Origin: Histomonas meleagridis 2922-C6/04-290x
Lineage: Eukaryota > Protista > Parabasalia
Assembly (NCBI GenBank): GCA_020184695.1
Contig: JAANOX010000271.1
Coordinates: 62,001-126,000 of the forward strand
DNA length: 64,000 bases
Reading direction: 5' to 3'
Within the stretch, counting starts at the first letter, position 1. Each line of letters opens with the position of its first letter. Below, piece by piece: positions 7,508-63,997 of this stretch. The translations under genes were made by a program, and so were the position numbers. Below the pieces are notes generated by a model, which was not told where the DNA came from, made no database searches, and saw only the letters and a program-made list of their open reading frames with translations.

Positions 7508-9952
7508 ATGAATAGCAAAAAAGAGGGGTTTCAATCAACTTACTTGGATATGGTTAATAAGTTAAAAGATATCATCTTTAATTTGAATCAAGAAAATTTT
7601 AGTTTTGCAATTCAAGAAACAATGAAATCATATGATTCAAATTTTTCATATTCATATAATTTACTTATAAGTATTTTAGTTTATAATGCATTTTGTTTGA
7701 GAAATAACGATGATGATATCTATATCTCATATTTATCAGAAATCGAAAACAAAGAAAAAGAAATGAACAAAAATGATCCAAAAATCATCGAAATTTTTAC
7801 TAAATTCACTTCAAATAAAGGAACACAAGAAGCATATTATATAATTACTGAGATGAAAAATCGAAAATTAACTGATAAATGTATTTTTTCAAAATATAAT
7901 CTTTCAAAAAATGTTAATGAAATTTCAAAAATAATTCGAAATGACGAAATCGAAAAACTTCAAGAAATATCATCACAACATGATTTTAATTTTAATCAAA
8001 CAATTAAACCATCACTTTATGAAAGATGTTCATTTATTAATCAAGAAAATGTTACATTAATTGATTATGCAGCATTTTTTGGCGCAATTGAATGTTTTAA
8101 ATATTTGCTTATAAATGGTGCAAGTGTAGAAAACACAGGTAAATATGCAGTTGCAGGTGGAAATGAAGAAATCATTCATTTATGTGAACAAAATCATTCG
8201 ACATTTGAAGGTGCATATGAAGCAGCAATTCAATTCCATCGAAATGAAATTTTCAAATATATTTATGAAAATAAATTAGATAAAATACAATCAAAGCCAA
8301 ATATGTCTGAAGTAAAAATCACACGTTATTTTTGTAATCAATCAAATAATAACATTGATACTTTAGGATGTTTTTGTGTGAAATATCAAAATTATGAAAT
8401 ATTTTCCTATTTAGAAGAAAATGGTATGAAAGTTAGTGGCCCTATATTCAATGAAACAGCAAGAATTGGAAACTTATATCTTGTTAAACATTTTCTCCAA
8501 TATAGCAAAATTTCAAGAGATATTTTTATATACGCATCTGAATCAGAAAATATTGAACTCATAATATTAGTTTTAGAACAAAAATTTATCGATATTAATG
8601 TAAAAAATGTTTTTTAATTTTTGTTCGAATTTAATTTTATAATTTTACGTTATAAAATGATTTTTGAATATTATTTAAAGAATTTAAAACACCAATTATT
8701 TGGGCAACTACAACAGGTAACATAGATTTTGTTAAATTAATTTTAGAACATGATGGAATAAATTTCAATATTCAGAATATTTATTTGTTTCTTTTGGAAT
8801 TTATTTTAATAAATTGATGTTTTATAATAATATTTGGAACTTATTAAAAATATTTAATACAGCATTCATGATTGCATATAAGAATGATTATAATGAAATA
8901 TTTAACTTACTTCTAGAAAAAGGAAGCATTGATGTTAAAATTAAAAATATTTAATTATATTGTTTTTTATTTATTTTCATAATTTTATGTTGTACAATAA
9001 TATTTGGAACTTATTAAAAATATTTGATACAATTCTTATGCTTGCAGTTAAAAAAAATGATATTAAATTATTCAAATATCTTCTCAAACATGGTGAAATA
9101 GATATTGATGTTATTGGTGTTTATTTATTTTGATTTCTATTTATCTTAATATTTTAATATTTTAATATAATATTTGGAAGTTATTCATCTTGTTTAAAAC
9201 ACCTCTTATATTAGCATCTTTAAATAATAGTATTGAAATAGTTGATATACTTCTTAAGAAAGGAGTTGATGTAAATGCTCAAGAGATTTAATTTTCACAC
9301 TTGATACAAGTTTTTAAAAGTCATATTTGGAAATTATTTAAAATATTTAGTACAGCACTTATTATTGCATCTAAAAAAGGTCATACTAAGATAGTTCAAT
9401 TACTTCTTAAAAAAGCAGTAATTGATGTAAATGCAAAAGATTTTTGTTTGCTTTTTTGTATATTTCTTTTTATTTTAATAATGTATGAAAATAATATTTG
9501 GATTTTATTGAATATATTTAAAACAGCACTTATTTGGGCAGCTAATAATGGCTTTGTTGAAATCGTTAATTTACTTGTTAAGCATGTAGGAATTGATATT
9601 AATGCAAAAGATATTATTGTTTTTTATTTAAAATTAATTTTTATGTTTTAATATTTCAATATTTTATTTGGTAATTATTGAAATTATTTAGTACAGCACT
9701 TATTTTATCAGCTTATAATGGTTACATAGAAGTTGTAAAACTACTTCTTTCACAAAATGAGATTGATGTTACAGCTGTAAATGTTTTAATATTTTATTTA
9801 AAATTTCTTTTAATAGTTTTGGGTTTCAAAATAATGAATGGTAATTATTTTAAGATTTTAATTCAGCACGTGATCTGGCATCATGGGAAGAGCACATTGA
9901 GTTTGAGAAATTATTAGACAATTCTTCAAGAAAAAAATGTTTTATTTGTTAA
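7508..9952 (+). CDS. DUF3447/ankyrin-repeat protein whose ankyrin array is split by eight non-canonical inserts (locus A)
   Basis: ORF 7508-8617 has the DUF3447-type block (AAFFGAIECFKYL...GGNEEIIHLCEQ...AIQFHRNEIFKY). It is followed by open ankyrin segments 8683-8784, 8853-8954, 9023-9124, 9193-9291, 9346-9447, 9517-9618, 9687-9788 and a terminal segment 9857-9952 ending KKCFIC*. Confidence 0.8.
8615..9856 (+). other. Eight U-rich intervening sequences, one per ankyrin repeat: 8615-8682, 8785-8852, 8955-9022, 9125-9192, 9292-9345, 9448-9516, 9619-9686, 9789-9856
   Basis: Lengths are 68, 68, 68, 68, 54, 69, 68 and 68 nt. TGG/TGA occurs at 8665, 8835, 9005, 9175, 9328, 9499, 9669 and 9839, always 24 nt before the T/S codon of the TAL motif. 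No consistent GT-AG ends and no ACTAAC branch point. Confidence 0.9.
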
Positions 9953-10269
9953 TAAAATAAACATTTATGGCACTTTAACATCCTATTGTTTATTTTTTAT
10001 TTAAGATCATTTTATTCCTGAATGAACTCGTAAATATATTTGATTTCATAAATGTATAAGTTATTGAGCAACTTAATGATACATTAATGGGTCCAAATGT
10101 CTTGTTTTGATATAAATTTCGAACTTTACTAAAATTTTATATGACAAAACGAAAAAATTTTGCTGAAATTAAATCAGAAGAAGAATTTACACGCTAATAA
10201 TATTAATTTATTTTAAACATAAATCTTTTAAGGCACAATGCAATTCTTTTTTCCCATTTCAATGTTTTC

Positions 10270-10620
10270 TCTGTCTCAACTGGCATCATCTCTCAGAAAA
10301 TGCTTCAGTGATATCAGTGTTTAACCTTGCTGAGGCTTCAAGGTATTTTGCATTGTATACTGCTGCAAGTACCTTCTTGCACTAACTTTCTAATATCTCT
10401 AAATATTTTACCTATGTTGTGAGCCGAAATGTTGCTGAAATTAACGGTCAATAAACGGTCACCAATTTCCAAAACTTTATTTATTCAAAAAGTCGAATAC
10501 GTCAAAATATTTTGAGGTGGCTGCAATTATTTTTAACGTCCTCTATCGTGTTTAAATCAAGTAAAGTATTTAATCTCATTGGTTACTTTACAGAAAAGTG
10601 ACGTTGAAACAATCTGAGTG
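10270..10620 (-). pseudogene. Possible decayed Ras-family small GTPase fragment
   Basis: Minus-strand pieces read NTIED (effector-loop-like) and AVYNAKYLEASARLNTDITEAF (G5-like), separated by stops and frameshifts. Confidence 0.3.
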
Positions 10621-10757
10621 GGGAGATAAAAATTCCAAAATTAACAAATGAACAAATATTTTACCTAAACCCATTTTAATAATTGTAAAAATACAAATGA
10701 ATGAAAATATTATAAATAATACTATTGATAAATTTTAAATTTATATATTACATACAT

Positions 10758-12989
10758 TTATTTATATAATTCGACTTCGAGCTCGCCCATTAATTCCTCG
10801 AAACTTACATGTTGATATCCCAAATTTACGTATTCACTTGGCGCTTCATTTTCGACAAATTTTATTATTTTGTCAGCGAACATTTCAATGTCAAATCCTT
10901 TGTCAATCGGCAGCAGAAAACTCTGCAATTTGATTTCGATGTTATCTCTGATGTACAATGGCCAACTGCTTCCTTCGATAGGTGTAACTGAGTTTTCGAC
11001 ATCGATCAATGGAATTTGCAATTTATATAACTCATTAACATATCTTAAAAATTCGCTTTTTTGGATCAGACGGAGTGAGAAAGGCAAAATTTTTTGTATG
11101 AATTCATCCGATTTGAAATTGTCAATTATCAAATTGATGACTTTGTTAATGAAACTAATGACGGCGTTCGCTGATGAGTTTATCCAATCAGAAGATTCAA
11201 GTAACCTGAATGATTTAGCGAAAACATTTTTCACAATTTGTAATATATCGCAAGAATAAAATTCGCGAAGAGAAGCAACAAAAGCACGTCTAAATATAGA
11301 GTCAAACCCTAATGAATATGAGCTGCATTCCTCAGCTCTAAACACATAATCACATGCCGTTGAATTTGTATCTTCGCAATTTAAAACGCACGTTATGTTA
11401 TTGACTGGTTTACGCAAAATTGAAATGTAAACCACTGAATTATCCAAAGTGAATTTCCCCACAAAAACCGTTTCCGGATCATTTTCATTTGTTATTTGAA
11501 GTTGCGAATTTGCTATTTCGGAACTGAATGAGTCATCATTAGATAATATATATAATGAGCTATAACATAAGCGCGGTAAATTCATCGGAAGCATTGTATA
11601 TAATTTTTGAGGTAATGGAATTGGAATTGGAATACAATTAAATCGCGGAATTTGCTTACGAATTACAATTGGTTTGACTTCTTCTTCAATTATTTCTTCT
11701 TTCGGCGCTTCGTCTTCTTCTTTTGTATATATTTGTTCTGTCTCTTCTTCTTCTTCTTCATAACTTTGTTCTGTTTCTTCACTTGGAAGTGTTTGTTCTC
11801 CACTTTCTTCGTTTTGTTTAATATCGATTTGTTCTGTTTCTTCATTTGGTATTGGAAATGTTTCGGTTTTTGGTGTTGGAAATGTTTCAGTTTTTGGTGT
11901 CGGAAATGTTTCTTGAGGAGCAATTGGCGGAGGTACATTTGTTGACGATTCCATTGGTGGACATAAGAAGTCGATTAAACTTATAGAGTCGAATGCGTTT
12001 TGTATTGATTCTGGTATTACCACATTTGGTATAATTGATAGGTCTGTGTTTGTATTGTTTTCAAAGTTCACAATGTTAGGTGAAACGTTTTTATAACTTT
12101 TGATTTGAAAGGCCTCAGAAAATGTATTCAAATTTTCATCAGAAAATTCAAACAGATTCTTTACCATGACGATGGGAAACTGCTCTCTCAATGACTTTCT
12201 GAGGTTTACAAGAGCGTCGATGTAAAGAATTGCAGAATTTTCCAACGCTGTGATAGAGATATAAATTGGGGTGTTATTTATTATGTTTAAAAACTGCTTG
12301 ACGTCATTATTTACTACTGCTTTTCTTAAGTTAATTGCGGCTTGTATTGGAGGGGAATTAATTACATCATTTGGAAATGTCATTAATTTATTCATAAATC
12401 CTTGGCTTGGTAAGTTAAGTAATAAATTTAATGATTTAAACTCATAATCAAATGGCGCACGATATCCATTTTGCATATAAAAATTATCATATCGTTCTTG
12501 TAAAAGTGAAAAACAATTCTCTAAAAGTTCCTGATTTTGTTTGTAACTGAATTTATCTGATGAATAGCAAACAAATTTTGCTCCAGACCAAATAAAAAAA
12601 AGTAATATCTTAAAAAGTATTTCGATTACTTCTAAACCTTGAAGATTTTGAAGTGTAATATCGAGTTCAATTGCACGAAATCGATCACGTAAAAAAAGAT
12701 ATAAGTCAAGATATGTTGTATCTTCTGACGTATTAAGTCTTTTTTGTATGACATATGAAAAAATGAAATCCATTGTTTTTTGTAAAACCGGCAAAGGGCG
12801 GATGTCTTTGGGATCATATTTTTTTTGCGCACCACTGCGAACATATTTTGAGATTGCAAGATTTTCATCAAATTTACCCGTGTTTGGATTGAATTCAAAT
12901 GCTGAAACTGCACCCTCATGAACGAGTTCTCCATTTGGATAACGAATAAATTGTGATGGTGGACACATTGTCATGCATTCACCAAGCAT
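10758..12989 (-). CDS. SAC3/GANP family mRNA export factor
   Basis: MLGECMTMCP start; YVRSGA...DIRPLPVLQKTMDFI; YLFLRDRFRAIELDITLQ, which are the characteristic SAC3/GANP domain motifs. Confidence 0.85.
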   Translation of the reverse strand: MLGECMTMCPPSQFIRYPNGELVHEGAVSAFEFNPNTGKFDENLAISKYVRSGAQKKYDPKDIRPLPVLQKTMDFIFSYVIQKRLNTSEDTTYLDLYLFLRDRFRAIELDITLQNLQGLEVIEILFKILLFFIWSGAKFVCYSSDKFSYKQNQELLENCFSLLQERYDNFYMQNGYRAPFDYEFKSLNLLLNLPSQGFMNKLMTFPNDVINSPPIQAAINLRKAVVNNDVKQFLNIINNTPIYISITALENSAILYIDALVNLRKSLREQFPIVMVKNLFEFSDENLNTFSEAFQIKSYKNVSPNIVNFENNTNTDLSIIPNVVIPESIQNAFDSISLIDFLCPPMESSTNVPPPIAPQETFPTPKTETFPTPKTETFPIPNEETEQIDIKQNEESGEQTLPSEETEQSYEEEEEETEQIYTKEEDEAPKEEIIEEEVKPIVIRKQIPRFNCIPIPIPLPQKLYTMLPMNLPRLCYSSLYILSNDDSFSSEIANSQLQITNENDPETVFVGKFTLDNSVVYISILRKPVNNITCVLNCEDTNSTACDYVFRAEECSSYSLGFDSIFRRAFVASLREFYSCDILQIVKNVFAKSFRLLESSDWINSSANAVISFINKVINLIIDNFKSDEFIQKILPFSLRLIQKSEFLRYVNELYKLQIPLIDVENSVTPIEGSSWPLYIRDNIEIKLQSFLLPIDKGFDIEMFADKIIKFVENEAPSEYVNLGYQHVSFEELMGELEVELYK
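11855..11913. repeat. 24-nt coding tandem repeat (TFPTPKTE, about 2.5 copies) in the SAC3 acidic linker
   Basis: ggaaatgtttc(g/a)gtttttggtgt(t/c) repeated directly. Confidence 0.85.
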
Positions 12990-13057
12990 TTTCTATTGAC
13001 AGAATATGTTAAAAAATTGACTATATTATGCCTTCCTAAATAAAAATCCCAAAAAAC

Positions 13058-13062
13058 TCATT
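13058..13062 (+). promoter_or_regulatory. Trichomonad-type initiator (Inr) TCATT
   Basis: TCATT three bases before the ATG at 13066; matches the TCAYW Inr consensus. Confidence 0.5.
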
Positions 13063-13065
13063 CCA

Positions 13066-13851
13066 ATGATTACAATTTCCTTCTTTCTAATATACACAAT
13101 CATTGGAATATTTTGTTGTTTTATCCTAACTGTTTTTTGGACGAAGTTTTTAAAGGGTTTTTTATTAAATACATATTATCAACAAAAATGTGAAAAATTT
13201 TCAAACAAGCAAAATTTATTAGAATTAGGTCCAGTACAACTCTCAGTTATATACAGGGCGCCTAAAAACATCGAATCAATTCGAGATCAAATTCGATGTA
13301 TTAATGAATTAATTAAAGAAAATCTTAGTAATGATTTTACATATGAAATCTTATGTCTTACAGATGACCCAAATACTTATTACTACTTAAAGCGTATTGA
13401 AAATGAATTATTAAACACCTTAATATTATACAGAGAAATAGAAGGATTAAAATGTCTTATAAATGGAATAATAGCATCAAGAGGTGATAGGATATGTGAT
13501 GCTAATTTTGTTGCCACTCAAATTCCATCATTTTCTTCTGATTATAATGCCGATTATATAGATTTTCTTGAGCCTTTAACAACTGGAATGACACATCTTT
13601 TCAAGCCAAGAGATTACAGTGCGCCTATTTCAATGACAAGGGGAGCAGCGCTAAAAATATTTCCAAAACTTCACATGATTCGTTTTTCATCATCAAACGA
13701 AATATTTCGTATATGTAAAACGATGAATATGCAAGTTCGTGTTGGAACCCAATTCTTCGGACGCAGTGAAATTCCTTTTCACATTATTGTCATCACTTTT
13801 TTGATGAAAAAACTTACAGACATTTTGTATAGAGTTGGAATTTGGTGTTAA
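13066..13851 (+). CDS. Divergent GT2/ALG5-like (dolichyl-phosphate glucosyltransferase-like) membrane protein
   Basis: N-terminal TM helix, then VQLSVIYRAP...FTYEILCLTDD, the GT2 beta1/beta2 layout; C-terminal LFPKLHMIRF resembles the ALG5 tail. The DXD motif is not intact. Confidence 0.5.
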   Translation: MITISFFLIYTIIGIFCCFILTVFWTKFLKGFLLNTYYQQKCEKFSNKQNLLELGPVQLSVIYRAPKNIESIRDQIRCINELIKENLSNDFTYEILCLTDDPNTYYYLKRIENELLNTLILYREIEGLKCLINGIIASRGDRICDANFVATQIPSFSSDYNADYIDFLEPLTTGMTHLFKPRDYSAPISMTRGAALKIFPKLHMIRFSSSNEIFRICKTMNMQVRVGTQFFGRSEIPFHIIVITFLMKKLTDILYRVGIWC

Positions 13852-14347
13852 AACAACAACTATACAGTATTGATTTATTAAATTTAAATAACTATATAAT
13901 TTTTTTTTAGTTAAATAACTGATTTTTGTGTTGTATTATGTGTGAAAATTTATGACGAATAACTCACAGTCGATTAATTCAAAAATCTCAAAGTTTTCCC
14001 TTTCAAGGAACTGTAACATTGTTGTTTTCTTGGTCCAGAAATTATTCAAATTTTAAGGGAACACCGAACAAATTTCACTCAAAACACCTGTTGTAAACGA
14101 GCTAAAAGTGACCAAATTATCTCAAGGAAAATTCTTTAAATTATTTCAAGTAACAACACCCAAAAAGTAAAACAAAATTTTAAGTTAACATGTGTCAACG
14201 ATAAGATCGCCAAGTTTTAAAATTAATAAACGTGCATTTTTTTCTGGGGTACTCCACTTTTTGAGAATGAAAAACAAGATTATCTTTATTTTATTTCTTT
14301 ATTTAACATTTTTATTCGAGTTTTAGGTTTATATCTAGGTTTTGTAT

Positions 14348-15094
14348 TCAAATATCTTTTGAAATAGGTTGATTTTTTTCCGTATTAATTAATTCATACA
14401 TGTTAAAAAGAATATTCCTGTGCATTGATTGACATCTTTTTATTTCGCCATTTGCACGAAATTTCTGATCTCGCATTGGTATAAATCTTCCAACGCAAAG
14501 CCCTGGAAATTCAGATTGAATTCCCTTAAAGCCGCTTTCCAAAAGGTACATTTTTGGAAAACAGAGTGTGGGGTAATCACGTATGTTGATTTTTCTGTCA
14601 TAATTTCGAAACGCTCTCATAATAGTCAAAGCTCTATTATCAGAAGCTGATTCGCAATAAAACACCAAAGATTGGTATCTTTTGGCATGGAATTTAAAGA
14701 ATTGTACTACATCTGATGTTCTATAAATGTTTTGAGCGTTAATAGCATGGCCACCCAAAAATTCATAGGGGTATCTAGAATCTATCGGAAATAATCTTGT
14801 ATCACCATAAGCTATCATATCATGATAAAACTTTGGAGATATAATTGGGAATTCCATATCTACCAAGTTTCTTCTATTTCGGCTACCATCACAAGACTCG
14901 CCATCATTCCCACTTTGGAAACTTAAATCGGGTGTTGGGATAATCCGATCATTTACCTGTGGGAATGAGTCTCTTATCATTTTGTGAGGTGTTGCCTCAG
15001 CCAAGTTTGAATGGCCATGTCCACTTTTTGGGCCAGCTGTAATTGAAACAGTTTTGAGGGATCTGATCTGAAAATGGTCCAATTTGAGAGGCAT
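14348..15094 (-). CDS. Cdc25-like rhodanese-domain protein
   Basis: IDSRYPYEFLGGHAINAQNI, LVFYCESASDNRA, RNYDRKIN...YPTLCFPKMYLLESGF follow the Cdc25 catalytic-domain order; ATG at 15094. Confidence 0.8.
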   Translation of the reverse strand: MPLKLDHFQIRSLKTVSITAGPKSGHGHSNLAEATPHKMIRDSFPQVNDRIIPTPDLSFQSGNDGESCDGSRNRRNLVDMEFPIISPKFYHDMIAYGDTRLFPIDSRYPYEFLGGHAINAQNIYRTSDVVQFFKFHAKRYQSLVFYCESASDNRALTIMRAFRNYDRKINIRDYPTLCFPKMYLLESGFKGIQSEFPGLCVGRFIPMRDQKFRANGEIKRCQSMHRNILFNMYELINTEKNQPISKDI

Positions 15095-15202
15095 TGAAAT
15101 ATTATGTGAAGTTCTTTTTTCATTGAAAAACGGGATGGAAAAACTCAATTTTTAAACGTTATATAATGAGAATCCCAACTAAAATCAAAATAAAAACAAA
15201 TT

Positions 15203-21904: not shown

Positions 21905-21969
21905 TTTCACATGAATTAAAGAATTGTTTAATTAAATGTCTTTAACATTAATTTTATTAGTAATTCAGC

Positions 21970-22042
21970 GCCTGCGTAGCATAGTGGTTATTGCGTTCGC
22001 CTTGTAAGCGAAAGGTCGGCGGTCCGACTCCGCTCGCAGGCA
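21970..22042 (+). tRNA. trnT-UGU: tRNA-Thr (anticodon TGT)
   Basis: Acceptor GCCTGCG/CGCAGGC; D-arm TAGCATAGTGGTTATTGC; anticodon arm TTCGC-CT-TGT-AA-GCGAA; T-arm GGCGG-TCCGACT-CCGCT; G1-C72/C2-G71; 73 nt. Confidence 0.95.
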
Positions 22043-22043
22043 A

Positions 22044-22049
22044 TTTTTT
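22044..22049 (+). terminator. Pol III oligo-T terminator
   Basis: T6 run immediately after the tRNA discriminator base. Confidence 0.75.
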
Positions 22050-22575
22050 GATTTTTTTTATATTTAAATCCTTCCCAAACAAACATTCCAATTTTTTTTA
22101 TAAATACATTAATTAATTTGCTTTCCACATTTATTTATAAGTGATTCCTTTCTTGCAATTTTGTTGATCATTAATTAATTAAAAATTTTATGATAATACA
22201 GCTTATTTCTATGATAATATAAGAAGTGGAATTATTGCTCAGCATCAGGATATTTCGGTATTTGAATATAATAATCATCATCTTAGAGATTTGTCTTCCT
22301 TTACTCCCAAACATATATTTCAACTTTTAGTATACGCAATATTACTGAATTCGTTTACATCATTTGAATCTCAAGCATGAAATCAAATATAGCTTTGATT
22401 ATATCGATTACGTCCATGATCACTCCGCATTTTTGTCTTGAATTTATTGTAAATTATACAACAATCAACATTTGAGATAATGTACGAGCTATAACTGGTT
22501 AAAACATTTCGCACATGTAAAGCTCTTCATTATGTACTTGTGATTTTGATATAGGCAATTTATTTTAAAATTTTT

Positions 22576-22735
22576 CATAAAAATCCAGAAGTTGCTAAAA
22601 TCCTTAATGATTCAGGAATTGATGTCAATGCAAAAGATAATACTAATGCAAGAGCACTTTTCACTTGTAAAAATCCAGAAATTGCTAAAATCCTTATTCA
22701 TTCACGAATTCACAACTATAGTTATCGTTCCTAAA
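22576..22735 (+). pseudogene. Short uninterrupted ankyrin fragment (30-aa period)
   Basis: KNPEVAKILNDSGIDVNAKDNTNARALFTCKNPEIAKILIHS; aaaaatccagaa repeats at 22579 and 22669. No start codon and no insert at the hairpin. Confidence 0.6.
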
Positions 22736-23402
22736 TTATTGTAATTAGAAAATGCACTGTCTCCAATTGAAATAACTGAATTTGGTATTACAATATTTGT
22801 TAAAGATGAACAGTAATAAAATGCACTATTCTCGATTGAAATTACAGAAATTGGTATTTAAATAATTGTTAATGATTAAGCATTAAAATATGAATATCCG
22901 GCAATAATTGTAACTGTATCTGGAATTTCAAATGTTAGACTCTATTCCTTCTGGATAACAAACAATTTTCGTGAAATCTTTATTATACAGAATTCCATTG
23001 TTTTCTAAAAATTTATCATTTCTTTCAGATACTTTAAAAGTATGAAATTTGCAAAAGCACCTCCAAATGAAGTAACTGAACTCGGAATTATAACGTTTGT
23101 ATTGTAGAGATTGTTAAGTGCATTTCTTCCTATTGTAGTTACACTTTCACCAATAGTTAGTGATGATAATCAACAATAATAAAATGCATAATCTGCAATT
23201 GTTTTTACCGAATCTGGAATTTTAATATTTGTTAATGAAGTACATCGATAAAATATATTCTCTTCAATTGTTAACACTAAATTTGAAATTTCAATACTTG
23301 TAAATAATGAACAATATGAAAATGTGTTATCCCCAATTGAAGTAACATAATTTGGAATTATAATATTTGCTAATGATGAATAACAAAACACATAACTTCC
23401 AA
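22720..23402 (-). pseudogene. BspA-like LRR_5 pseudogene fragment
   Basis: [67 protein letters not shown], with several stops and frameshifts. Confidence 0.85.
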
Positions 23403-23795
23403 TTGATCATAAAGGAATTGACATTAGCGCCAAAGATATTTATTCGTTATATTAGAAGATCTTTTGAATCATTTGATATTATAATATAATATTTGGAAAT
23501 CATTCAAATTATTTAAAACAGCACTTATATTAGCATGTCAATATTTGCAAATTGAATCAGTTGAGTTACTTCTTAAAAATAAAGGAATTAACATTAATGC
23601 TGCAGGTATTTGAACATTATATTTAATGTTAATTTGAATCTTTTGATATTTCAAATCAATGTTTGGGATTTAATAAATGCATTTAATACAGCTATTTCTA
23701 TCTCAAATGCGAAAGGAAATCCACAGATAATCAAAATGATTAACGATACTCTTCATCTAATATTCCAATTTTTTTTTAAACATATTGGCTCTTAA
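23403..23795 (+). pseudogene. Orphan ankyrin fragment with two 68-nt inserts (locus B)
   Basis: GIDISAKDIY | 23444-23511 | FKTALILACQYLQIESVELLLKNKGININAAGI* | 23614-23681 | FNTAISISNAKGNPQIIKMI; TGG at 23494 and 23664. Confidence 0.8.
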
Positions 23796-23871
23796 AAACT
23801 ATAAATTAATTTCAATTTCTTGAAACATTATTTTAACAATAGAAGTGAACAATTTATCAACAGTTATTTAT

Positions 23872-26933: not shown

Positions 26934-27288
26934 TCAAGAAGACATTTTAGTAAAATGTTCAAGATTTCCATTTTGAGATGCTAAAACAATTCCATAAAAT
27001 ATTTTAAACAAATTTGATATAATATTTTCAAACATAAAATCATAAAAATAAAAATCATTTAAAATAAATTAACATAAATACTATTAATGATACATTTATT
27101 TCCAAGAAGTAATTTAATTATTCTCACATGACCATTTTTAGCTGAATAAGCAAGTGCTTTACAAAATATATTAAACAATTTCGAAATATTATTTAAAAAT
27201 AATTTTTATGTATATCTTTGGTGTTTAAATCAATTCCATCTTGTTCGAGAAGTAATTTAACTGCTTCTTTTAAGCCATTTTCAGATGT
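26934..27288 (-). pseudogene. Decayed ankyrin fragment with two inserts (locus D)
   Basis: TSENGLKEAVKLLLEQDGIDLNTKDIH | 27207-27167 (41 nt) | FCKALAYSAKNGHVRIIKLLLGNKCIINSIY | 27073-27000 (74 nt) | FYGIVLASQNGNLEHF. Confidence 0.75.
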
Positions 27289-27489
27289 TCCCAATCATTT
27301 GGCACTGAATTTTTATCAGTATGTTGAAACAATTGTGATATTAAATAACCGTTTTCTTTGGAACTTTATTTTTTGTTTATTTTACAAAAAGTGGTAAAAA
27401 TTTTTTTGCTTGCAAGTAATTCAAATTATTAAAAGAAATTACTATTGTACGCAAAGACACTGCTGAGTAAATGCTTAGCAAAGGTTTAG

Positions 27490-33763: not shown

Positions 33764-33767
33764 AAAC

Positions 33768-40656: not shown

Positions 40657-40678
40657 TGAAATTTGTTTTTAAACACGT

Positions 40679-47437: not shown

Positions 47438-47480
47438 CCAAATATGCATTGAAAACGAACGAAAAGAAAAAGATAAAAAA

Positions 47481-48752
47481 ATGTTTTAATTTTTTTGTTG
47501 TGTTTTTTTCATGAATTCTTTTTCAATTATTTTATGATAATTCAACACTAACAATAATAAGTTCAAATGATTTTAATGTAATTAATCAATATAAAAACGA
47601 TACAAAATTTATAATTATTGGTGAAGGAATTTATTCAATTCCAGGCATTTCATTTTCAGGATGGTCATCAGTTATTTCTGTTGATTTTGGGAAATCAGTA
47701 TCAGATATTGCAGGTTCTGTTTTTTCGTCATGCTTAAGTTTAGAAATAATTATTTTTGGAGAAAATGTCACAACAATTGGTGGATCAGCATTTTCATTAT
47801 GTTCATCAATCAAAAACATTACAATTCCAAATTCAGTCACAGCAATTGGCGATTATGTATTTGGATTATGTTCTAATTTAATAATATTAACACTTGGATA
47901 TGGAATTAAAGAAATTGGAAATTCAGCATTTGGTAATTGTTACAATCTTCAATGCATTTATTATTATGGAGAAACTGAACCAAGTATTGGAGAATCTGCA
48001 TTTTATAATGTTACAGCAACAGTTATAACATATCCAACATATGTAGATGAAAAATTTGGGAATTTAGAAGTTGTTCAAAGTGTAGAAGGAAATTGCAATC
48101 CAATTTCAACGATTTCATTTTCAGTATCACACACATTCAGTCGAAGCGATACATATTCTGTTTCAAACACATTTTCTCTTTTTAATACATATTCAGCACC
48201 GCATACATTTATCCAAAGTAACACATTTTCAAAGTCATTTGCATTTACTGAATCACTTCAAAATGATTTAACGAAAACTTTTTCATATTTATTAACTTTT
48301 ACATTATCAATTACGCATTCGTTTACTTATTATGAAATACAAACAAAAAAACAATTTCGTTNATTACGATTNATTCGTCATATATTTATATCGAAACGGA
48401 ATTTATTTATTATGATTACACAGTTATTGTTTATTCGACATATTACAATTACTATTCGAATTTCTTTACATTTATTTATAGAAATGAAATTCAGACAAAT
48501 GATAACAAAACAAAAATTATCACAATAATAGTTTGCGTTATTGTTGTTGTGATTATTATAATTTCATTACTTATTGTGTTATTGATTCGAATTAAAAATC
48601 AAAAAGAAGAAATTGATGAAAATGAAATATCAGAACAACAAAGTGACAACCAAACTGCAAACACATTCACAACAGGAATATCTATATCAAACATTGAAGA
48701 GGATCCTTTTGCAGATGATTTTAAAGAAGAGAAATTCATTGAACAAATGTAA
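47481..48752 (+). pseudogene. Second, inverted copy of the BspA-like gene at 36281-37500, frameshifted (pseudogene or assembly error)
   Basis: Near-identical to the reverse complement of 36281-37500; extra T at about 47519-47523, A7 instead of A5 at 48345-48351, and N bases at 48362 and 48372. Confidence 0.8.
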
Positions 48753-49289
48753 TTGAGATAAATATTTAATAAAATATCGTCTATTCTAAATGAAATCATT
48801 TTTTTTTAAGTATAATATTTTTAAATTATTAAAAAATTCATTATGTTGTTTCAGTTTGTTTAGGTAATTGTTGGCGATTCTTGTAACATATTCTATAAAT
48901 TTGTTTTTGATACCACACTTATTTACATAAGAAAATGCATTTTAAAATTTAAGTGCATAACAATAGCTCCACATAATTATGTATTCATGTCTTAAATTTT
49001 ATGTATTTTGGAAAGCATTTTTTATGTCAAAATTTTTCTTAGAAATTAATTATGATAATTGGATATTCGGCATTACACTTGATGACTGTTCTCAATCAAC
49101 TCTATCACACAATCAAATACATTTAATTTGATTTCTATAGTATTTAATAATTCATCTTTATGCTTATATATAAGAAATTGTTTTTAATGAAAAGGTATTT
49201 CATTCATTCTTTGGATTTATCAAAATGAGTTTAACCAATTAAAATAAAAACACTTCATTTTTATAAAAATTTTATTCATTTATACTTTA

Positions 49290-55720: not shown

Positions 55721-58387
55721 TTATGCATTTGGCTGCATTATTGGCTGTTTAACGCTATAGTTTTGGTAATTATACTCTTGCGGCGGTGCATTGTACACAT
55801 AGTTTGGATCATCTTCTTCGAGGTAAGCGTTCTGTGCCGACATCTTTCTATTACCATCCGAGCTATTATCCATTTTATTCATACGTCTTCTCAACACAAT
55901 ATAAACCACGAAGAATACCATATTACCCACAACAACTATAACAGATACTACAATCACTACGATTACTCCACCTGGTATTGGGGCGCTTGGGAATGTAGTT
56001 GATTCGTTACATTCTTGGAAACCTTTAATTACATATAAGTCACCGAATCTACTTCCATTATAATCCTCATTTACGTATATATGCGTTGCTTTAATATCAT
56101 CGAAAGCTTCATTTGAAACATAAGGCTCAGAATCCCCAAAGTAATATATACAATTTAATGATTCACAATCTTTGAATGCATCATTATTTATACTTTGTAT
56201 GTATTTAGTTAAGTTAAGACTTACTAATGAAGTACATTTATAAAATGCATAACTATCAATAACAGTAATTGAATCCGAAAAGATAATTGTCCTTAATGAA
56301 GTACATCTTGAAAATGCAAATGAATTAGTTCTAGTTAATGAATTACCAAATGTAATGTTCTCTAAAGATTTACAACTCTCAAATGCATATTGCCCAAGAT
56401 AAGTTAATTCTGTTAAAGGTGATATATATTTTAAGTTTGTACAATATTGGAAAGCATAATCTCCGATACTAATTGCAAGTCTTCTAAATGTTACTGATAT
56501 TAATGAAGAGAATGATTTAAATGATTTATCGCCAATATTAATTATACCTTTACCAACTGTTAAATGTTGTAACTTATAACAACCATTAAAGATAGATGTA
56601 AAGAATTGTGTTATATTATCACCAATTGTAACATTATTTAATGAAAGACATGAACTAAAGATATAATTACCAATCGATTGTACTGTATCAGGTATTACAA
56701 TTTCTGTAATATTATAACATCCTTCAAATGCATATGAATTAATCTCCGTTAAATTGTTACCAAATTTAATTGTCTTTAATGATCTACATCCGGAAAATGT
56801 ATATGAGTTAATTGTTGTCAAATTATCGCCTAAAATTATATTATCTAATTTATAACAATTATAAAATGCATACTTGCCAAGATATGTTAATGATGTTAAT
56901 GGTGAAATACTTGTTAAGTTATAACATCGTTCGAAAGCATATTGTTCAATTCGAATCGGAGGATTCTTAAATGTTAATGTAACTAATGATTCAAATGCTT
57001 GGAACATATAACCATCAATTGAATTAATACCTAATCCAAGTGTTAAATGTTTTAAGTTATTACATCTTGAAAAGATATACGCATAAAAATCTGTTATTCC
57101 ATCACCAATTGTAACATTATTTAATGATGTACAAGAATAAAATATATATCCATAAATAGATGTAACTGAATTTGGTATTATAACTTCAAATAGACTTTGA
57201 CAATATTCAAATGCATTCTGATTAATAGTTAAAAGTCCTTCAGAGAAATTAATTTTCGTTAATTTAGAACAATTAGAAAATGAATATGATCCAATTGTAG
57301 TTAAACATTCTGGAAATGTAATTGTTTCAAATCCACATTCTTTAAATGCATATTGACCTATTTTTGTAATATTTGTTGCTTTAAAGATAACACTTTCTAA
57401 TTTATTGCATTTATAAAATGAATATGATCCAATTTCATTAACATTTAATCCAATGATAACTTTAGTTAAATTGAAACATGAATCAAATGAATTTGGTGAA
57501 ACAGATTTAACTAAATCTGGAATCGTAATCGAAATTAAATTCGAACATTGGCAAAATGAATATGATCCTAATGTAAATAAATTGTTTCCTAAGTCAACTT
57601 CAGTTAATGAAACACATGATCGAAATGCATATTCACAAATAGTTTCTACAACTGACGGAATGTTAATTTTCGATAACTCAACACAGTTACCAAATGAATA
57701 TGATCCAAATGTCTTTAATGAACTCTCATTTCCAAATGTTACTGTAGTTAATTTGATGCAAAAATTAAATGCATATGAATCAATAGCTTTAACACTATTT
57801 GGAATTGTGACTTCAAGTAATGAAGAACAATGATCAAATGATTTCTCACCAATTGCAGATGCATTACAATCAATTGAAAGATCTTTTAGAGATGTGCAAT
57901 ATGAAAAAAGTTGTTTTGAAATGTTTTGAACACTTTCGCCAATTTTAGCAGTAATAAGTTTATCGCATTGTGCAAAAACAGATGTTCCTAGTGATGTAAC
58001 ATTTCCGGGAATTACAATCTCTTTAAGTGATGTGCACGAATAAAATGCAGCATCGCCAATAGTGTTTAAGTTTTGGCCATTGATAAAGTTGATTTCTTCT
58101 AACTTAAAACAGGAATAAAAAGCATTTGAATTGATTGTCGTAAGGGAATCGCCGATTGTAACTGTTTGCAAAATCGGCCAATTTCTGAATGCAGAACTAT
58201 CAATTATGCTGACGCCTTCGCCAATTGTAAGATATCGAACTGTATCTTTGTATTGCGCATAGACACTTTGGTAAATAGTGGATACGTTTGTAATGACGAG
58301 TGTTTCATCGCAATGTGCAAACAAAGGAAATATTAATCCTAATAACATTTCTAACTTTGGTTTTTCGAAAAAAACTGCTGCTGCCAT
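55721..58387 (-). CDS. BspA-like LRR_5 surface protein with signal peptide, TM helix and Tyr-rich cytoplasmic tail
   Basis: Many TpLRR repeats (IGxxAFxxCxxL); signal-like MLLGLIFPLFAHC (ATG at 58348 is an alternative start); TM VIVVIVVSVIVVVGNMVFFVVYIVL followed by RRR. Confidence 0.93.
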   Translation of the reverse strand: MAAAVFFEKPKLEMLLGLIFPLFAHCDETLVITNVSTIYQSVYAQYKDTVRYLTIGEGVSIIDSSAFRNWPILQTVTIGDSLTTINSNAFYSCFKLEEINFINGQNLNTIGDAAFYSCTSLKEIVIPGNVTSLGTSVFAQCDKLITAKIGESVQNISKQLFSYCTSLKDLSIDCNASAIGEKSFDHCSSLLEVTIPNSVKAIDSYAFNFCIKLTTVTFGNESSLKTFGSYSFGNCVELSKINIPSVVETICEYAFRSCVSLTEVDLGNNLFTLGSYSFCQCSNLISITIPDLVKSVSPNSFDSCFNLTKVIIGLNVNEIGSYSFYKCNKLESVIFKATNITKIGQYAFKECGFETITFPECLTTIGSYSFSNCSKLTKINFSEGLLTINQNAFEYCQSLFEVIIPNSVTSIYGYIFYSCTSLNNVTIGDGITDFYAYIFSRCNNLKHLTLGLGINSIDGYMFQAFESLVTLTFKNPPIRIEQYAFERCYNLTSISPLTSLTYLGKYAFYNCYKLDNIILGDNLTTINSYTFSGCRSLKTIKFGNNLTEINSYAFEGCYNITEIVIPDTVQSIGNYIFSSCLSLNNVTIGDNITQFFTSIFNGCYKLQHLTVGKGIINIGDKSFKSFSSLISVTFRRLAISIGDYAFQYCTNLKYISPLTELTYLGQYAFESCKSLENITFGNSLTRTNSFAFSRCTSLRTIIFSDSITVIDSYAFYKCTSLVSLNLTKYIQSINNDAFKDCESLNCIYYFGDSEPYVSNEAFDDIKATHIYVNEDYNGSRFGDLYVIKGFQECNESTTFPSAPIPGGVIVVIVVSVIVVVGNMVFFVVYIVLRRRMNKMDNSSDGNRKMSAQNAYLEEDDPNYVYNAPPQEYNYQNYSVKQPIMQPNA

Positions 58388-58628
58388 TCAATTTTGAAAA
58401 GTGAATGTAACTTGCCAGACAGTTATGTAAGAAATGATCGTTCGATATTATCAAAAAGCGAAAACATTGATCACTATCTATCGGAATTTCAGAGTGATGA
58501 TGGGAAACAATTCAATTTGTCTATCGTTCGACCAGCGAACGTTCGTATTTTGGGGCACCGCGAATTTCATAGCTTTACCTTCTTTGGTCAAAAGATAAGC
58601 AAAATAAACGTCCTCAAAAGAGACCCAG

Positions 58629-60113
58629 ATGTTCTCTTTGTTCGTTGGACTTATTTTCGCTGCGAGGATTACCCAACATTTAGGAGAACCTGTTTTATCA
58701 AAGGTATGCGGCGAAAATTTATTAGTTTATACTAAAGAATCTTTCTTTTCAATGATAGATGATTCAACTGGATCCATTCAATGGCGTCAACTAATTCATC
58801 AAGTTCAAGCATTTGACGTAGTTGATGATGTAGTGATTGTTGGTTCCAAACACTATTATTATATTTTAGATAAAGAAACTGGTCTTATCTTGTATCAATA
58901 TCATCATCAAGTCAGAACAGTACAAGAAATCACCAAGTCAAATAATACGGTTGCGATTCGTGGAGAAGGAATTCTTCGCATATATGATATTGAAAATCTC
59001 ATTTTAAGCATTGACATTCCAGAAAATAATGAGAAAGGCTTACTTCTTACCAACACCACAGTTGTTTGTGGCTCTACCGAATATGATTTAACCACTGGTT
59101 CTAAACTTGGCTCTCGATCAATCCCTTATCAGACAGCCGATCTTCGATATTTACCCACAGTCATCGAGCGCTATTCCGAAGGTACACTTAAATGGCGTAT
59201 TGATGAGCCACTTCAAGGTTCCACACTTCTTACTGCGATTTCCAAATCAAAAATTCTTCTCAAAAACGACACGCATCTTCTTGTCTATGACATTAATCAG
59301 CAACTTCTTGTTCTCTGCGAGCCATACATTGTTGAAAGCATTGACCAAACCACAGATGGCGTATACATTCGTACGTCCAAAGAAATTTTGAAGCTAAATC
59401 CGAAGACATTATATCTCAGCAAATACGACGGCCGCGTTGAAGGCGGCAGCTTCGTGAACAATACAATTCGCATTAAGAACGCTCAATTTACGTTTCCATC
59501 ATATTGCACACCGAAATGTAGTTGCGCATCACCGACAATTGGAAGTTTCTTAGCCGCATCGCAATGCAACGAAATGATCTCTGTTGCGATCTTTGATAAG
59601 AACGGCAAGAACAAATACTTAGTTGAGACAGAAGGTTCCATTGGCACGTGTTGGTGCAATGATAACTCCGCGTCAATCTCATATTATAAGCCCAAGAAGA
59701 AGACTTCGTACATTAACTCGTTTTCTCTGTTAAATAATTCGCAACGCTCGTTCACTACTGAAGAACTCGTTGTAGCTGCGAATAATAACATATTAATTCT
59801 GGCCGACGGAGAAGTGATATCAATACCCGAAGCGAAGTATAACGGAGATGTGCAATTCCAACAAAGTTATACGCAACAATTTTACGAGCCCGACTTAAGA
59901 GGAGGAAGAAGAAATGGCGCATACGAAAACGCGAGAAACATCGCAAATGGATTCGGTGTGGTGGTGGTGCAGAGCAATGACATATACACACTGGATGACG
60001 AAATGGGTTTCCCGGCTTCAATGCACTTGCTGGTGGTCGGCGCGTTCTTGGTGCTGAGCTTGGGTCTGTATTTGAACTCTTTGTTCTCAAAGAAAAGTTC
60101 GTTTTGGAAATGA
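58629..60113 (+). CDS. Type I membrane beta-propeller protein, EMC1-like architecture
   Basis: Signal peptide; TGSIQWRQ PQQ-like blade; single C-terminal TM followed by ...KKSSFWK, reminiscent of the EMC1 terminus. Confidence 0.45.
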   Translation: MFSLFVGLIFAARITQHLGEPVLSKVCGENLLVYTKESFFSMIDDSTGSIQWRQLIHQVQAFDVVDDVVIVGSKHYYYILDKETGLILYQYHHQVRTVQEITKSNNTVAIRGEGILRIYDIENLILSIDIPENNEKGLLLTNTTVVCGSTEYDLTTGSKLGSRSIPYQTADLRYLPTVIERYSEGTLKWRIDEPLQGSTLLTAISKSKILLKNDTHLLVYDINQQLLVLCEPYIVESIDQTTDGVYIRTSKEILKLNPKTLYLSKYDGRVEGGSFVNNTIRIKNAQFTFPSYCTPKCSCASPTIGSFLAASQCNEMISVAIFDKNGKNKYLVETEGSIGTCWCNDNSASISYYKPKKKTSYINSFSLLNNSQRSFTTEELVVAANNNILILADGEVISIPEAKYNGDVQFQQSYTQQFYEPDLRGGRRNGAYENARNIANGFGVVVVQSNDIYTLDDEMGFPASMHLLVVGAFLVLSLGLYLNSLFSKKSSFWK

Positions 60114-62418
60114 ATAAATCCAAAAATATTATTACAAATATTCGTTTCTATTTGATTCCAAAGCGATTGTGAATTCACGTTCGGTTGGAAGATCATAAAA
60201 ACGAGTCAATTTACTTAGAGCCTTTGTGTTTATCAATCAGATTTAACAAACTTTTGTGATATGATGTTGGAAACACCATCCAAATGTACTACTTATAATT
60301 GAGAAGCATTAATAAAACATAATTTTTACTACCTATAATAAATAAATGAATAAATAAATAGGTATTAAAATGTATATGAATGTATGGCATATATATTATA
60401 TATTGATAAAGATATTTTCATTTTATGTTGAGTTTATAACAAATTGAATGATAGGTAACGTTGAAGTGATCTCTTAACGTATAAATATTCGTGAAAAAGT
60501 CAACACCTGCCTCAGAAATCAAACCGGAAATTATATAAGTAAATCATAACAACCAGCTCACCTCATGTTTTTTTTTATTTACTTCATTAATTACAACGTT
60601 TTTTTTTTCCTTTTTTTTCTTCTTATTTCTTTTTTCAAATTTTTCTTATTTAATTTTTTTTTTTTTTCAAATGCTTAATGGAATGATATTTTGACTTCAT
60701 AAATTTAATATTCATTGAATCAATTATATCATGGATTTGAATTTTTGCTTTGTCTAAAATAAATAAAATATATGTTTCGGTTGTTTTGTTATTTGAAACA
60801 GATGTGATTGAAATGTGTCTGATCTCAGAAAACCTTTCAAAGGATTGGATCAAGTTAAAAATGACTTCTAAATTAACCAATTGTTGTAACAATTTGTGTG
60901 AACATTTAAAATATAAAATTTCTCTGACCATATCCTCAAAGCATTTAACACTATAAATATGATTATCTCAGGCTTTATTTCCAGTTCTTTGATTGACTTT
61001 TTTTGATACAAATGAAACAAACGATATAAGACTCTATTATTTTCCAATTATATTAAGTAATATCTATATTATTAAGATACGAGTTATTGAAAACAATATC
61101 TGTAAAACAATAATTAAAAAATAATATTCAATCTTTAATTAGAAATGATTTATTTCGTAAACAGCTTTAAGAGTTTTCTAATGTAAATCTCATTAGAGAT
61201 TTCATCAATTATTATAACTACATAAACATAATTCAAATTCTAAAATTTCTTGCATGCAAAACACCACTAACTGAGGAAAAAAATTTATTAAATATCATTA
61301 ACATCACTCAAAGAGCGTAATTTTTTTTTTTTTGGCGACAGTTTATTTGGTTGTCGTTCATTATTATTATAATTTTATGAAATTTCATATATGAAACCTA
61401 TAATAGTATAGCTTATTTTAAATATCAAAATATTTCAATGTTATGATTTAAAACATTTTGTGTTCACAAAATCGATTGTGTCATTTTATTCTCACATAAA
61501 TTTTTATGCCAGCGACGATACATTTGATAATTTCAATCGGCTCGCTTCAAAACCGCAGCAGCTTAAAAGTGCTGTGGGTTTCTGCACAGGTACAGAAATA
61601 AGTAAACCACTATCAAAATCAGTATTTTCTTAGGTCAATAGGTGTGTCTTTCGTCTTGCGCACGTTTGTAACCATATTTTGTTATTTTCTACTTGTTCAT
61701 TCAACAGCAAAAACAAGTAAAATACTCATGAAATTAATGTAATTATTCTAGTGGATAAAGATACCCCAATAATAGCTCAAAATAATTGATAAAGATATTG
61801 AAATCCAATTATCAATAATGGATCTAATGAATATATGAATAAAACAAAAATTTTCATAAATACATTTAAATTAGAAAAAAAATAGGATTTGACTATTTAT
61901 TCAGATTTATGATAATAACTAATTCGTCCGCTTTAAATATATAAAAACATCTTTAAGTACTAATGAACCCAGCCTTTGTCCTCATATCTTATTAAAAGAT
62001 CCAGGCATCAAAAGATTCAATTCCTTTCAAATCTGGAAGCGCCATTCGTCACATCCAGAAAAAATCCATATCAAGATCTTCTCAGCTGAGTTTTTAGATA
62101 TTTTAGTTTTTATTTTTCTGTGGTTTATATGTTTTGGAAGGTACATTGCATGTTTAAAAAATTGTCTTCTCAGAATAATTTTTGATTCTTAACTCAATGG
62201 CTACAGGAAAAATATAGATTTTTCATATAAAAATCATTTATTTATATGAATGAAAAAATTTAAATATACGCCTGTTTTGAAGTGACATCATCTCTCAATT
62301 AAGAGATATTTTAATTTTGCTAAAATCTAAAAAAGATAAATCACTGGTCACCAGTTCTGTTAAGTGGTACAATTGTGCAACTTATCAAAAATTAGTAGAA
62401 CACTTACCAAATTCTAAA

Positions 62419-63997
62419 CTAAATGGCACCTTTTTCACTGAGTAATTGTTTTATTTCTCTGAAACCCAACCGATTAGCGATTTTAAATGCTGTTTCAAAT
62501 TAATAAAACATAATCCAAATTATTAAAACATATTTCAAATTATTAAAACATATATAAAATTATTCAAATGAATAGTTTTTTCATTAACATCAATTCCTTT
62601 TTGTTCTAAAAGTAATTTTACTATTTCTAAATTATTATTTTTAACTGCTATATGAAGTGCTGTTTCAAATTATTAAAACATATTTTAAATTATTAAAACA
62701 TATTTCAAATTATTAAAACATATTCCAAATTATTCAAATGAATATTTTTTGCATTAACATCAATTCCTTTATCTAAAAGTAATTTTACTATTTTTATATT
62801 ATTATTTTCAACTGCTATATGAAGTGCTGTTTCAAATTATTAAAACATATTCCAAATTATTGAAACATATTCCAAATTATTCAAATGAATATTTTTTGCA
62901 TTAACATCAATTCCTTTATCTAAAAGTAATTTTACTATTTCTATATTATTATTTCTAACTGCGATATGAAGTGCTGTTTCAAATTATTAAAACATATTTC
63001 AAATTATTAAAACATATTCCAAATTATTAAAACATATTCCAAATTATTAAAACATATTCCAAATTATTAAAACACATTTCAAATTATTCAAATGAATAGT
63101 TATTGCATTAATATCAATTCCTTCTTTATCTAAAAGTAATTTTACTATTTCAATATTTTCTAATTTAACTGAATATGGTAAAATTGTTTTTGGAATTTGT
63201 TGACTTTCTATTATAAATGTATTTCCCTTTGATGCTATTTCCCCTATAATTTCATTATTTATTTTCATTCCTTCTTTTTCTAAAAACGAGAAGATTTCAT
63301 AATTATTAAATTCTACACATTTTTTCCCAAGATATATTAAATTTTCTTCACTTAAATTATAATTACCTTGATTTTCGAAATCAGAATTCGATTTTGTAAA
63401 AGAAGATTTTGAAGATGAAAATTTTCCAATTTTATTTTCATAAAGATAACGAAAAATTTCATTTTGATGAAATTCTATTGCTGTTTCATATGCTTCTGTA
63501 AATGATGAATTATTTTGTTCACATAAATGAATAATTTCTAAGTTTCCACCTGCAATTGCATATTTAGATGTATTTTTGATATTCGAATTATTTAATAACA
63601 AATATTTAAAACATTTAATCGAGCCAAAAAATGCACAATAATCAATCAATGAAACATTTTCAGTATTAATAAATGAACATCTTTCATAAAGTGATGGCTT
63701 AATTTTTTGATTAAAGTCAAATTCATTATTTGATGATATTTCTTGAAGCTTTTCTAAATCATCATTTCGAAGTACTTTCGCAATTTCGAATGGGTTGACT
63801 CCTTCTTTTACATATTGCATATGAAGTTTCCAATCATCTTTTGATAATTCATCAAGTGATGAAATGAATTCCCCAAAGAATTGTAGTCTTAGATACAAAT
63901 ATTCGTTCTTTGATCTATAGCATTCTTCATATTGAGAAAAATATAATGTGTTCATGTTCTTTACTGAAGATGGTTCAATTATTTCTTCTTCTATCAT
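62419..63997 (-). CDS. DUF3447/ankyrin-repeat protein with four minisatellite-built inserts (locus C); the 5' end may extend past the window
   Basis: DUF3447-type block as in locus A. Ankyrin segments 62983-62885 (33 codons), 62836-62738 (33 codons), 62669-62568 (34 codons) and terminal 62499-62419 (FETAFKIANRLGFREIKQLLSEKGAI*). Inserts 63091-62984, 62884-62837, 62737-62670, 62567-62500. Confidence 0.8.
62500..63091 (-). repeat. 20-nt minisatellite ATAATTTG(G/A)AATATGTTTTA forming the locus C inserts
   Basis: AAATTATT recurs every 20 nt on the plus strand (62981, 63001, 63021, 63041, 63061, 63081); 5, 2, 3 and 3 units in the four inserts. Confidence 0.92.

Follow-up and report, generated by a model that had tools for sequence, protein, structure and literature searches.

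Background

The ultra-short introns of mikrocytids, heterotrich ciliates and nucleomorphs end in GT...AG. As spliceosomal introns of fixed length they measure 16-17 nucleotides (nt) in mikrocytids, 15-16 nt in heterotrich ciliates (Stentor) and 18-21 nt in the chlorarachniophyte nucleomorph (PMC10245619). Within the Parabasalia, the type B introns of Trichomonas vaginalis and T. stableri are 23-25 nt long and have GT/AG ends and a (T)CTAA branch motif that is merged with the 3' site (PMC12316389), and in the genome of Histomonas meleagridis, which has a G+C content of 28%, introns are scarce, with a maximum of one per gene (PMC8529796). The present work concerns a stretch of 64,000 nt of H. 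meleagridis 2922-C6/04-290x DNA (contig JAANOX010000271.1 of assembly GCA_020184695.1, positions 62,001 to 126,000 of the forward strand, hereafter the window and numbered from its first letter), in which the coding sequences of ankyrin-repeat genes are broken up by inserts made of AT-rich 17-nt pieces and single retained codons. An initial annotation of this DNA had taken each insert for one fixed-length element of 68 nt that is recognised by a ruler and a 3' anchor, with a TGG triplet at -24 and an invariant TTT codon at which reading resumes.

Like the ultra-short introns, the pieces have a narrow length distribution near the physical minimum, are AT-rich, are removed from RNA and have a length that is apparently measured; however, whereas the spliceosomal introns of mikrocytids have highly conserved sequences (PMC10245619), the internal sequence of the pieces is only loosely conserved. 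They differ furthermore in their R-T...T-T ends (R being A or G) and in standing in tandem, 3 nt apart, within one loop of one repeat family. With the type B introns they share the occurrence in Parabasalia, the very short and uniform length and the richness in T (PMC12316389), but there is at most one type B intron per gene in T. vaginalis and at most two in T. stableri, whereas here we find up to 31 per gene, of 17 nt each and without AG or CTAA. The micro-exons of animals and plants (at least 3 nt) likewise include single-codon exons that are kept in the mRNA, yet here three follow one another across 17-nt gaps. Known micro-exons are flanked by normally sized introns that carry canonical signals. 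An AT start is common among the pieces, as in the U12-type AT-AC introns, but the position matrix of the pieces contains no match to the U12-type 5' motif ATATCCTT, to the branch site TCCTTAAC or to the AC 3' end. The non-conventional introns of euglenids and the bulge-helix-bulge introns of archaea and tRNAs also lack GT-AG ends; theirs, however, need pairing of the ends or a fold, whereas the pieces have a fixed length and no predicted fold beyond that of shuffled controls. Finally, in the bypassing of phage T4 gene 60 and in programmed frameshifting a coding gap breaks the frame in the DNA, as it does here, but there the gap stays in the mRNA, from which it is absent here. Full-text literature searches returned no description of 17-nt pieces, of non-GT-AG introns or of tandem single-codon exons in Histomonas or other parabasalids.

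Results

Inserts are carried by two genes and two gene fragments of the window. Gene A (7508..9952, + strand) and gene C (62419..63997, - strand) both encode a DUF3447 domain followed by ankyrin repeats, and their modelled mRNAs have intact open reading frames (ORFs) of 637 and 429 amino acids once 31 and 17 pieces, respectively, are removed. Locus B (23396..23770, + strand) is the 3' fragment of an ankyrin gene, and locus D (26985..27300, - strand) is a decayed ankyrin fragment with frame breaks upstream, which looks like a pseudogene. In Pfam the ORF at 7508-8617 of gene A matches PF11929 and Ank families. The exons score 24-34 bits with the Ank profile PF00023 (cut-off 21.1), those of gene A matching its positions 4-32; with the DUF3447 profile PF11929 (cut-off 26.9) gene C scores 36.8 bits and gene A 26.8 bits, just under the cut-off.

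When the inserts of loci A, B and C are measured from the end of the last complete exon codon up to the codon that precedes T-A-L, the exon-to-exon gaps are 77, 77, 77, 77, 63, 78, 77 and 77 nt in A, 77 and 77 nt in B and 117, 57, 77 and 77 nt in C. The 77-nt gap parses as 17|3|17|3|17|3|17, that is, as four AT-rich pieces and three kept codons. The shorter lengths given in the initial annotation (A: 68, 68, 68, 68, 54, 69, 68, 68; B: 68, 68; C: 108, 48, 68, 68) are reproduced, but 68 nt is not the unit: it equals 77 less 9, the count having left out the first 6 nt of the insert and its last 3 nt. Likewise, its values of 108 and 48 nt are correct and are explained by six and three pieces, and its observation that no length is of the form 3n+1 holds and follows from piece counts of 3, 4 and 6.

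On the + strand of gene A, insert A1 (8609..8685) is composed of the pieces 8609-25, 8629-45, 8649-65 and 8669-85 with the kept codons CGA, TAC and GAA. Four 17-nt pieces are also found in A2 (8779..8855; kept GGA, GAT, GGA), A3 (8949..9025; TTT, TAT, GGA), A4 (9119..9195; TCT, AAT, GGA), A7 (9613..9689; AAA, AAT, GGT) and A8 (9783..9859; AAA, TGG, GGT). A5 (9286..9348) reads 17 / GATACAAGT / 17 / GGA / 17, with a micro-exon of 9 nt, and A6 (9442..9519) is irregular and 78 nt long. The two inserts of locus B (23438-23514 and 23608-23684, + strand), as judged from the DNA, would likewise consist of four 17-nt pieces and keep GAA, GAT and GGA in the first and AAT, GAT and GGG in the second. Inserts C1 to C4 (within 62497..63097, - strand) contain six pieces (C1, 63097-62981), three (C2, 62890-62834), four (C3, 62743-62667) and four (C4, 62573-62497), and they are built of a 20-nt tandem unit, a minisatellite, comprising one 17-nt piece and one codon (GGA, GAA, AAA or TAT). 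The micro-exons are mostly of 3 nt and occasionally of 6 or 9 nt, the number of pieces per insert is usually four and elsewhere three or six, and 54 of the 55 pieces of the window are 17 nt long. In locus D (- strand) the first two units of insert 1, which starts at 27213, span 31 nt and not 37, and insert 2, starting at 27079, would keep an in-frame TGA; such a loss of the 17-nt register is what a dead gene, freed from the constraint, would be expected to show.

The kept codons include no stop (0/41), start with G in 27 of 41 cases and in 12 of 14 inserts encode glycine at the third position, usually as GGA or GGT. They fit what the neighbouring exons lack. Each 31-residue exon corresponds to Pfam Ank positions 4-32 of 33, the first residue of the exon lying at position 3, and because the exons hence cover positions 3-32, exactly three residues are missing (33, 1 and 2, the last being Gly). 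These are the three loop residues x-x-Gly that the kept codons supply between consecutive ankyrin exons. The resulting 17+3 model predicts, for example, the mRNA junction word CAGAAT-GGA-GAT-GGA-AATACAGC and the loop-spanning peptide ...NIQNGDGNTAFMIAYK. It also accounts for the TGG at -24 of the initial annotation, which is present in 11 of 14 inserts of A to C (TGA in A1 and C1, TAA in C3; 11 of 16 with D) but is no anchor motif, as it is made up of the last T of piece 3 and the GG of the kept glycine codon. Similarly, the motif ATTTGGAA-N-TTAT does occur, yet not as a separate signal: it arises where piece 3 ends, the codon GGA follows and piece 4 begins.

Direct support for this layout comes from contigs of the same organism that were compared with the region 7300-10100. 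Those of one DNA run, at a word depth of about 500-600x, follow the window colinearly across every insert of gene A. The RNA contigs, which come from three runs and are about 966 nt and 634-653 nt long, gave the same picture in each run: the first aligns as 8257-8608 / 8856-8953 / 9349-9442 / 9519-9613 and the second as 9689-9782 / 9859-10100, each with 0-1 mismatches. The inserts of gene A are therefore missing from RNA and present in DNA. Moreover, sampled 31-mers of gene A are present at 0.84-0.86 in DNA runs and at 0.52-0.59 in RNA runs, and the share of 0.655 predicted for spliced gene A agrees with the observed ratio of RNA to DNA.

The RNA contigs also contain letters that fit neither flank, 8 between 9782 and 9859 and 4 between 9442 and 9519. 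Since these letters lie within A8 and A6, a single cut per insert is excluded there and part of the insert must be kept. In A8 the 8 letters represent the 9 kept ones less the last, which matches 9859. In A1 the RNA piece ends at 8608, and from there to 8856 the contig has 111 letters, or 9+93+9; at A2 the next piece starts exactly at 8856, and at A5 a piece starts at 9349, where the contig coordinate 770 is reproduced by the model. The net removal amounts to 136 nt (8 x 17) for A1+A2, 187 nt (11 x 17) for A3+A4+A5 and 68 nt (4 x 17) for A8. All 12 RNA-contig coordinates are reproduced by the modelled 17+3 mRNA of gene A.

A simulation of the alignment boundaries under the 17+3 model predicted 9 of 10 piece ends to the base. 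Chance extensions by one letter were both predicted and seen at 9613 (the A of AAA) and at 9689 and 9859 (the T of GGT), and, GGA being the kept codon there, no extension was predicted or seen at 8856 and 9349. At A3 all three RNA runs show a piece that reaches 8953 with one mismatch, as predicted from the kept TTT+TA, which matches ATTTA at 4 of 5 places. An alternative layout with a single micro-exon ending in ...TGG and one 17-nt intron was rejected, because the boundary simulation then fails at 4 of 5 end boundaries.

These coordinates also bear on the assumption that each insert is one non-canonical intron of fixed length, about 68-77 nt, that is defined by the TGG motif and a ruler and left at the TTT re-entry codon. 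The lengths and motifs on which this assumption was built do reproduce, and TTT is indeed present at -6 in 14 of 14 inserts of A to C. However, this TTT forms the 3' terminus of piece 4 and does not appear in the RNA, as the RNA pieces that start at 8856 and 9349 do not reach 8855 and 9348. Furthermore, the 8 and 4 RNA letters between the flanks fit neither side, the Ank coordinates demand three more residues including the Gly, and the comb test described below singles out 17 nt, so that we regard a single intron per insert as extremely unlikely.

Could the RNA have been transcribed from another, insert-free template, such as a processed paralogue or a gene from which the inserts are excised somatically as in ciliates, while the copy in the window is silent? 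The DNA side of our comparison consists of contigs of one DNA run, which leaves this idea some room. Then again, the DNA contigs are colinear over every insert, and among the joints listed for the DNA run there are no 17-nt skips; between the RNA pieces and the window there are 0 mismatches over 350 nt. Sequences eliminated at the DNA level would be looked for by their absence from DNA and by TA|TA boundaries, but the inserts are present in the DNA-run contigs and the pieces are not bounded by TA. Nuclear dimorphism is, to our knowledge, not known in parabasalids. An insert-free template is thus very unlikely.

The spacing of 17 nt was examined by a comb test that is anchored at the exon ends and compares gap sizes of 12-24 nt; it was used instead of the autocorrelation of G over whole loci, which is uninformative as the exon signal dominates. 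At 17 nt only, the triplets that would be kept have a G+C content of 0.39, compared with 0.06-0.19 at the other gap sizes, and at this gap 13 of 24 triplets start with G and none is a stop. When a position matrix derived from the 17-nt pieces was used to score chains of at least three pieces at 20-nt spacing, chains were found in the window solely at the insert loci, in none of 20 local shuffles and once in unrelated metagenome DNA of about 180 kb, part of it AT-rich. As a negative control, a metagenome scan for the motif of piece 3, GGA and piece 4 gave 30 chance matches, none of them with the comb. Single 17-nt pieces in other genes of the window, judged by removals that would fuse ORFs, are not commoner than those of 14, 20 or 23 nt (15 each).

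The 77-nt modules have ungapped identities of 0.62-0.83 within A, 0.55-0.73 between A and B and 0.47-0.65 in comparison with C, against 0.42 +/- 0.05 for shuffles. To call the inserts barely alignable, as the initial annotation did, was thus an overstatement (0.47-0.83 overall), but it was right that they are not the product of random decay. The ten modules differ at 17-53% of their sequence with zero indels, and the inserts are removed from RNA. Changes in length are seen in the pseudogene D and in the irregular A6. The length of the pieces is tightly constrained and is their most conserved property across diverged paralogues and in a related species. Among the 13 recently duplicated units of locus C, the piece is nearly invariant, with differences at 4 of its 221 positions versus 9 of 39 for the codon (p = 7e-6).

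It might still be argued that these are decaying pseudogenes or genes riddled with minisatellites, from which any protein would arise through ribosomal frameshifting or bypassing. In its favour, loci D and B are fragments, and the inserts of locus C form a minisatellite. The spliced ORFs are intact, however, the kept codons are free of stops and rich in glycine, and translational bypass is not needed because the inserts are absent from the RNA. We consider the probability of this explanation to be negligible.

The consensus of the pieces is R1-T-T-T-A ... A14-T-T-T. Position 1 is A in 27 and G in 9 of 41 unique pieces (A or G in 36/41), T occupies positions 2-4 and 15-17, and A predominates at position 5 and is also common at 10, 11 and 14. 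The exon base that precedes a piece is A or T and the base that follows it is G or A; the pieces themselves contain 5.8% G and 3.3% C. None of 54 pieces ends in AG, and among the pieces there are neither GT-AG nor AT-AC ends nor a CTAAC-type branch motif. The window contains no trichomonad-type intron matching the regular expression GTAYGT...ACTAACACACAG. Folding of inserts together with their flanks was compared with shuffles and revealed no stable fold in A2, A8 and B1 (z = +0.51, +0.18 and +0.26, respectively); the tandem-repeat insert C3 alone folds (z = -3.05).

The same comb occurs outside the window. On another H. meleagridis contig (L002) it is found downstream of a paralogue, flanked by the ends and starts of ankyrin exons, and in metagenome contigs of a relative from ENA (L003 and L004) it is present with the loops H-F-G, H-E-G and Y-D-G, where only a 17-nt gap works. 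In L003 the 3' ends of the pieces vary (CCT, TTC, TGT, TAT) while the length always remains 17 nt. Of the ruler and 3' anchor that the initial annotation had proposed, the ruler is therefore retained, at 17 nt, and the anchor is not. A more distant DUF3447-ankyrin relative (L005:3340-3900; Logan SRR29367400, 26% G+C) carries, at the same place in the loop, inserts of about 34-36 nt, which are off the 17+3 comb and may represent a different or intermediate layout.

Publicly annotated paralogues of H. meleagridis stop at the start of the first piece, so the members of this ankyrin family are probably annotated as truncated proteins. On L002, the public annotation at 4001-5266 of a 'cask-interacting protein' of 421 amino acids is a single ORF, and the 17+3 ankyrin exons lie outside it, downstream at about 6650-9250. 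When the N-terminal ORFs of genes A and C served as queries, protein searches returned only paralogues, of at most 70% identity, and no copy derived from cDNA; the closest named relatives of the insert-bearing genes are H. meleagridis proteins.

Discussion

We think it likely that the inserts are tandem 17-nt intervening sequences split by retained codons, which are transcribed and then excised by a length-measuring and very divergent splicing machinery. The layout of the inserts, the constraint on length, the retention of the codons and, for gene A, removal of the pieces at the RNA level are shown by the data above, and the mature mRNA would encode an uninterrupted DUF3447-ankyrin protein. 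As length is the most conserved property of the pieces, we infer that their excision involves a measurement of length. The most plausible agent would be a very divergent parabasalid spliceosome that operates at minimal intron size and with relaxed ends. If the pieces are removed sequentially, each 3-nt exon would have joined an already long exon upstream by the time of the next cut. Modules of one piece and one codon multiply by tandem duplication, as the 20-nt units of locus C show, and each additional unit adds one residue to the loop.

Several points weigh against this interpretation. The RNA evidence consists of Logan contigs, not of raw reads, and the letters of the kept codons are deduced from coordinates, counts and boundary matches instead of being directly read. 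In locus C (62430-63110), sampled 31-mers are present at 0.91-0.93 in DNA runs and at 0.45-0.60 in RNA runs, and the latter share exceeds the 0.34 expected with full splicing; the pieces of this locus may be partly retained, or DNA may be present in the RNA libraries. The R-T...T-T termini fit no known spliceosomal class, and a spliceosomal agent is a deduction. A6, finally, departs from the simple comb, since its RNA keeps 6 letters and not 9.

At A6, where 4 letters separate the RNA piece that ends at 9442 from the one that starts at 9519, two parses fit both coordinates. One is 17|TAT|18|AAT|37, in which the GGA micro-exon is skipped as the fourth piece starts with T. The other is 17|TAT|38|GG+T, in which the unit whose codon TAA would otherwise be kept is skipped and the last piece, 9502-9518, measures 17 nt from an A. 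The 4 letters would be ATAA under the first parse and ATGG under the second. The second parse, if true, would support a ruler that is anchored at the 5' end.

But would the excision have to be spliceosomal at all? RNA could also be cut by a non-spliceosomal system, such as an endonuclease-ligase pair or a guide-RNA system that measures 17 nt from R-U-U-U, and the pieces would then form a new class of intervening sequence. The ends of the pieces speak for such a system: GT-AG, AT-AC and CTAAC were not seen, 0 of 54 pieces end in AG, only 9 of 41 unique pieces start with G, and in L003 the 3' ends vary while the length is fixed at 17. In addition, known exon or intron definition does not easily accommodate single-codon exons among 17-nt gaps, and the introns of Trichomonas are GT/AG, at least 23 nt long and at most one per transcript (PMC12316389). 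Then again, neither a bulge-helix-bulge nor another stable fold is predicted (z = +0.2 to +0.5 in 3 of 4 inserts), no candidate enzyme or guide RNA was found, with one tRNA as the only Rfam match in the window, and fixed lengths of 15-21 nt are known for reduced or unusual spliceosomes (PMC10245619). On balance we regard a non-spliceosomal excision as rather unlikely. Somewhat more broadly, it is conceivable, though doubtful, that the 17-nt pieces constitute a new kind of intervening sequence. Their removal would then be the work of a non-spliceosomal machinery or of a radically re-tooled spliceosome, which would count 17 nt from a weak R-U-U-U start without requiring GU-AG ends or a neighbouring exon of normal size, and a minisatellite could add loop residues one at a time.

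Excision of tandem 17-nt pieces by a divergent, length-measuring splicing machinery, which we favour, would break three expectations at once, namely that introns have GT-AG or AT-AC ends, that exons have a minimum size and that the genomes of parabasalids are poor in introns, as gene A alone would contain 31. A fixed length of 17 nt in combination with variable ends would make the pieces a simple system for studying how an excision machinery measures distance, and the 20-nt units of locus C show intron gain by tandem duplication caught in progress, at one loop residue per gain. H. meleagridis being a pathogen of poultry, it is also of practical relevance that proteome and expression analyses would miss its ankyrin proteins or assign them a wrong size.

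Other features of the window

The window is AT-rich (19-38% G+C) and contains long uninterrupted ORFs. Ankyrin-like repeats at 22560-22740 (+ strand) have an uninterrupted loop (…DVNAKDNTNARALF…), which indicates that 17-nt pieces are not present in all ankyrin-type repeats of the genome. Directly adjoining the truncated ankyrin fragment of locus B, on the opposite strand, lies a BspA-like leucine-rich-repeat sequence (22750-23400, - strand) that contains in-frame stops and is apparently a pseudogene. A tRNA gene (RF00005, 66 bits) at 21970-22042 (+ strand) is the sole Rfam family match in the window. A second BspA-like leucine-rich-repeat gene, at 47514-48760 (+ strand), has a C-terminal transmembrane tail and ambiguous residues (X) in its translation. 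Removal of 17 nt would bridge the break in its frame near position 48460, but such bridges are no commoner than those of 14, 20 or 23 nt.

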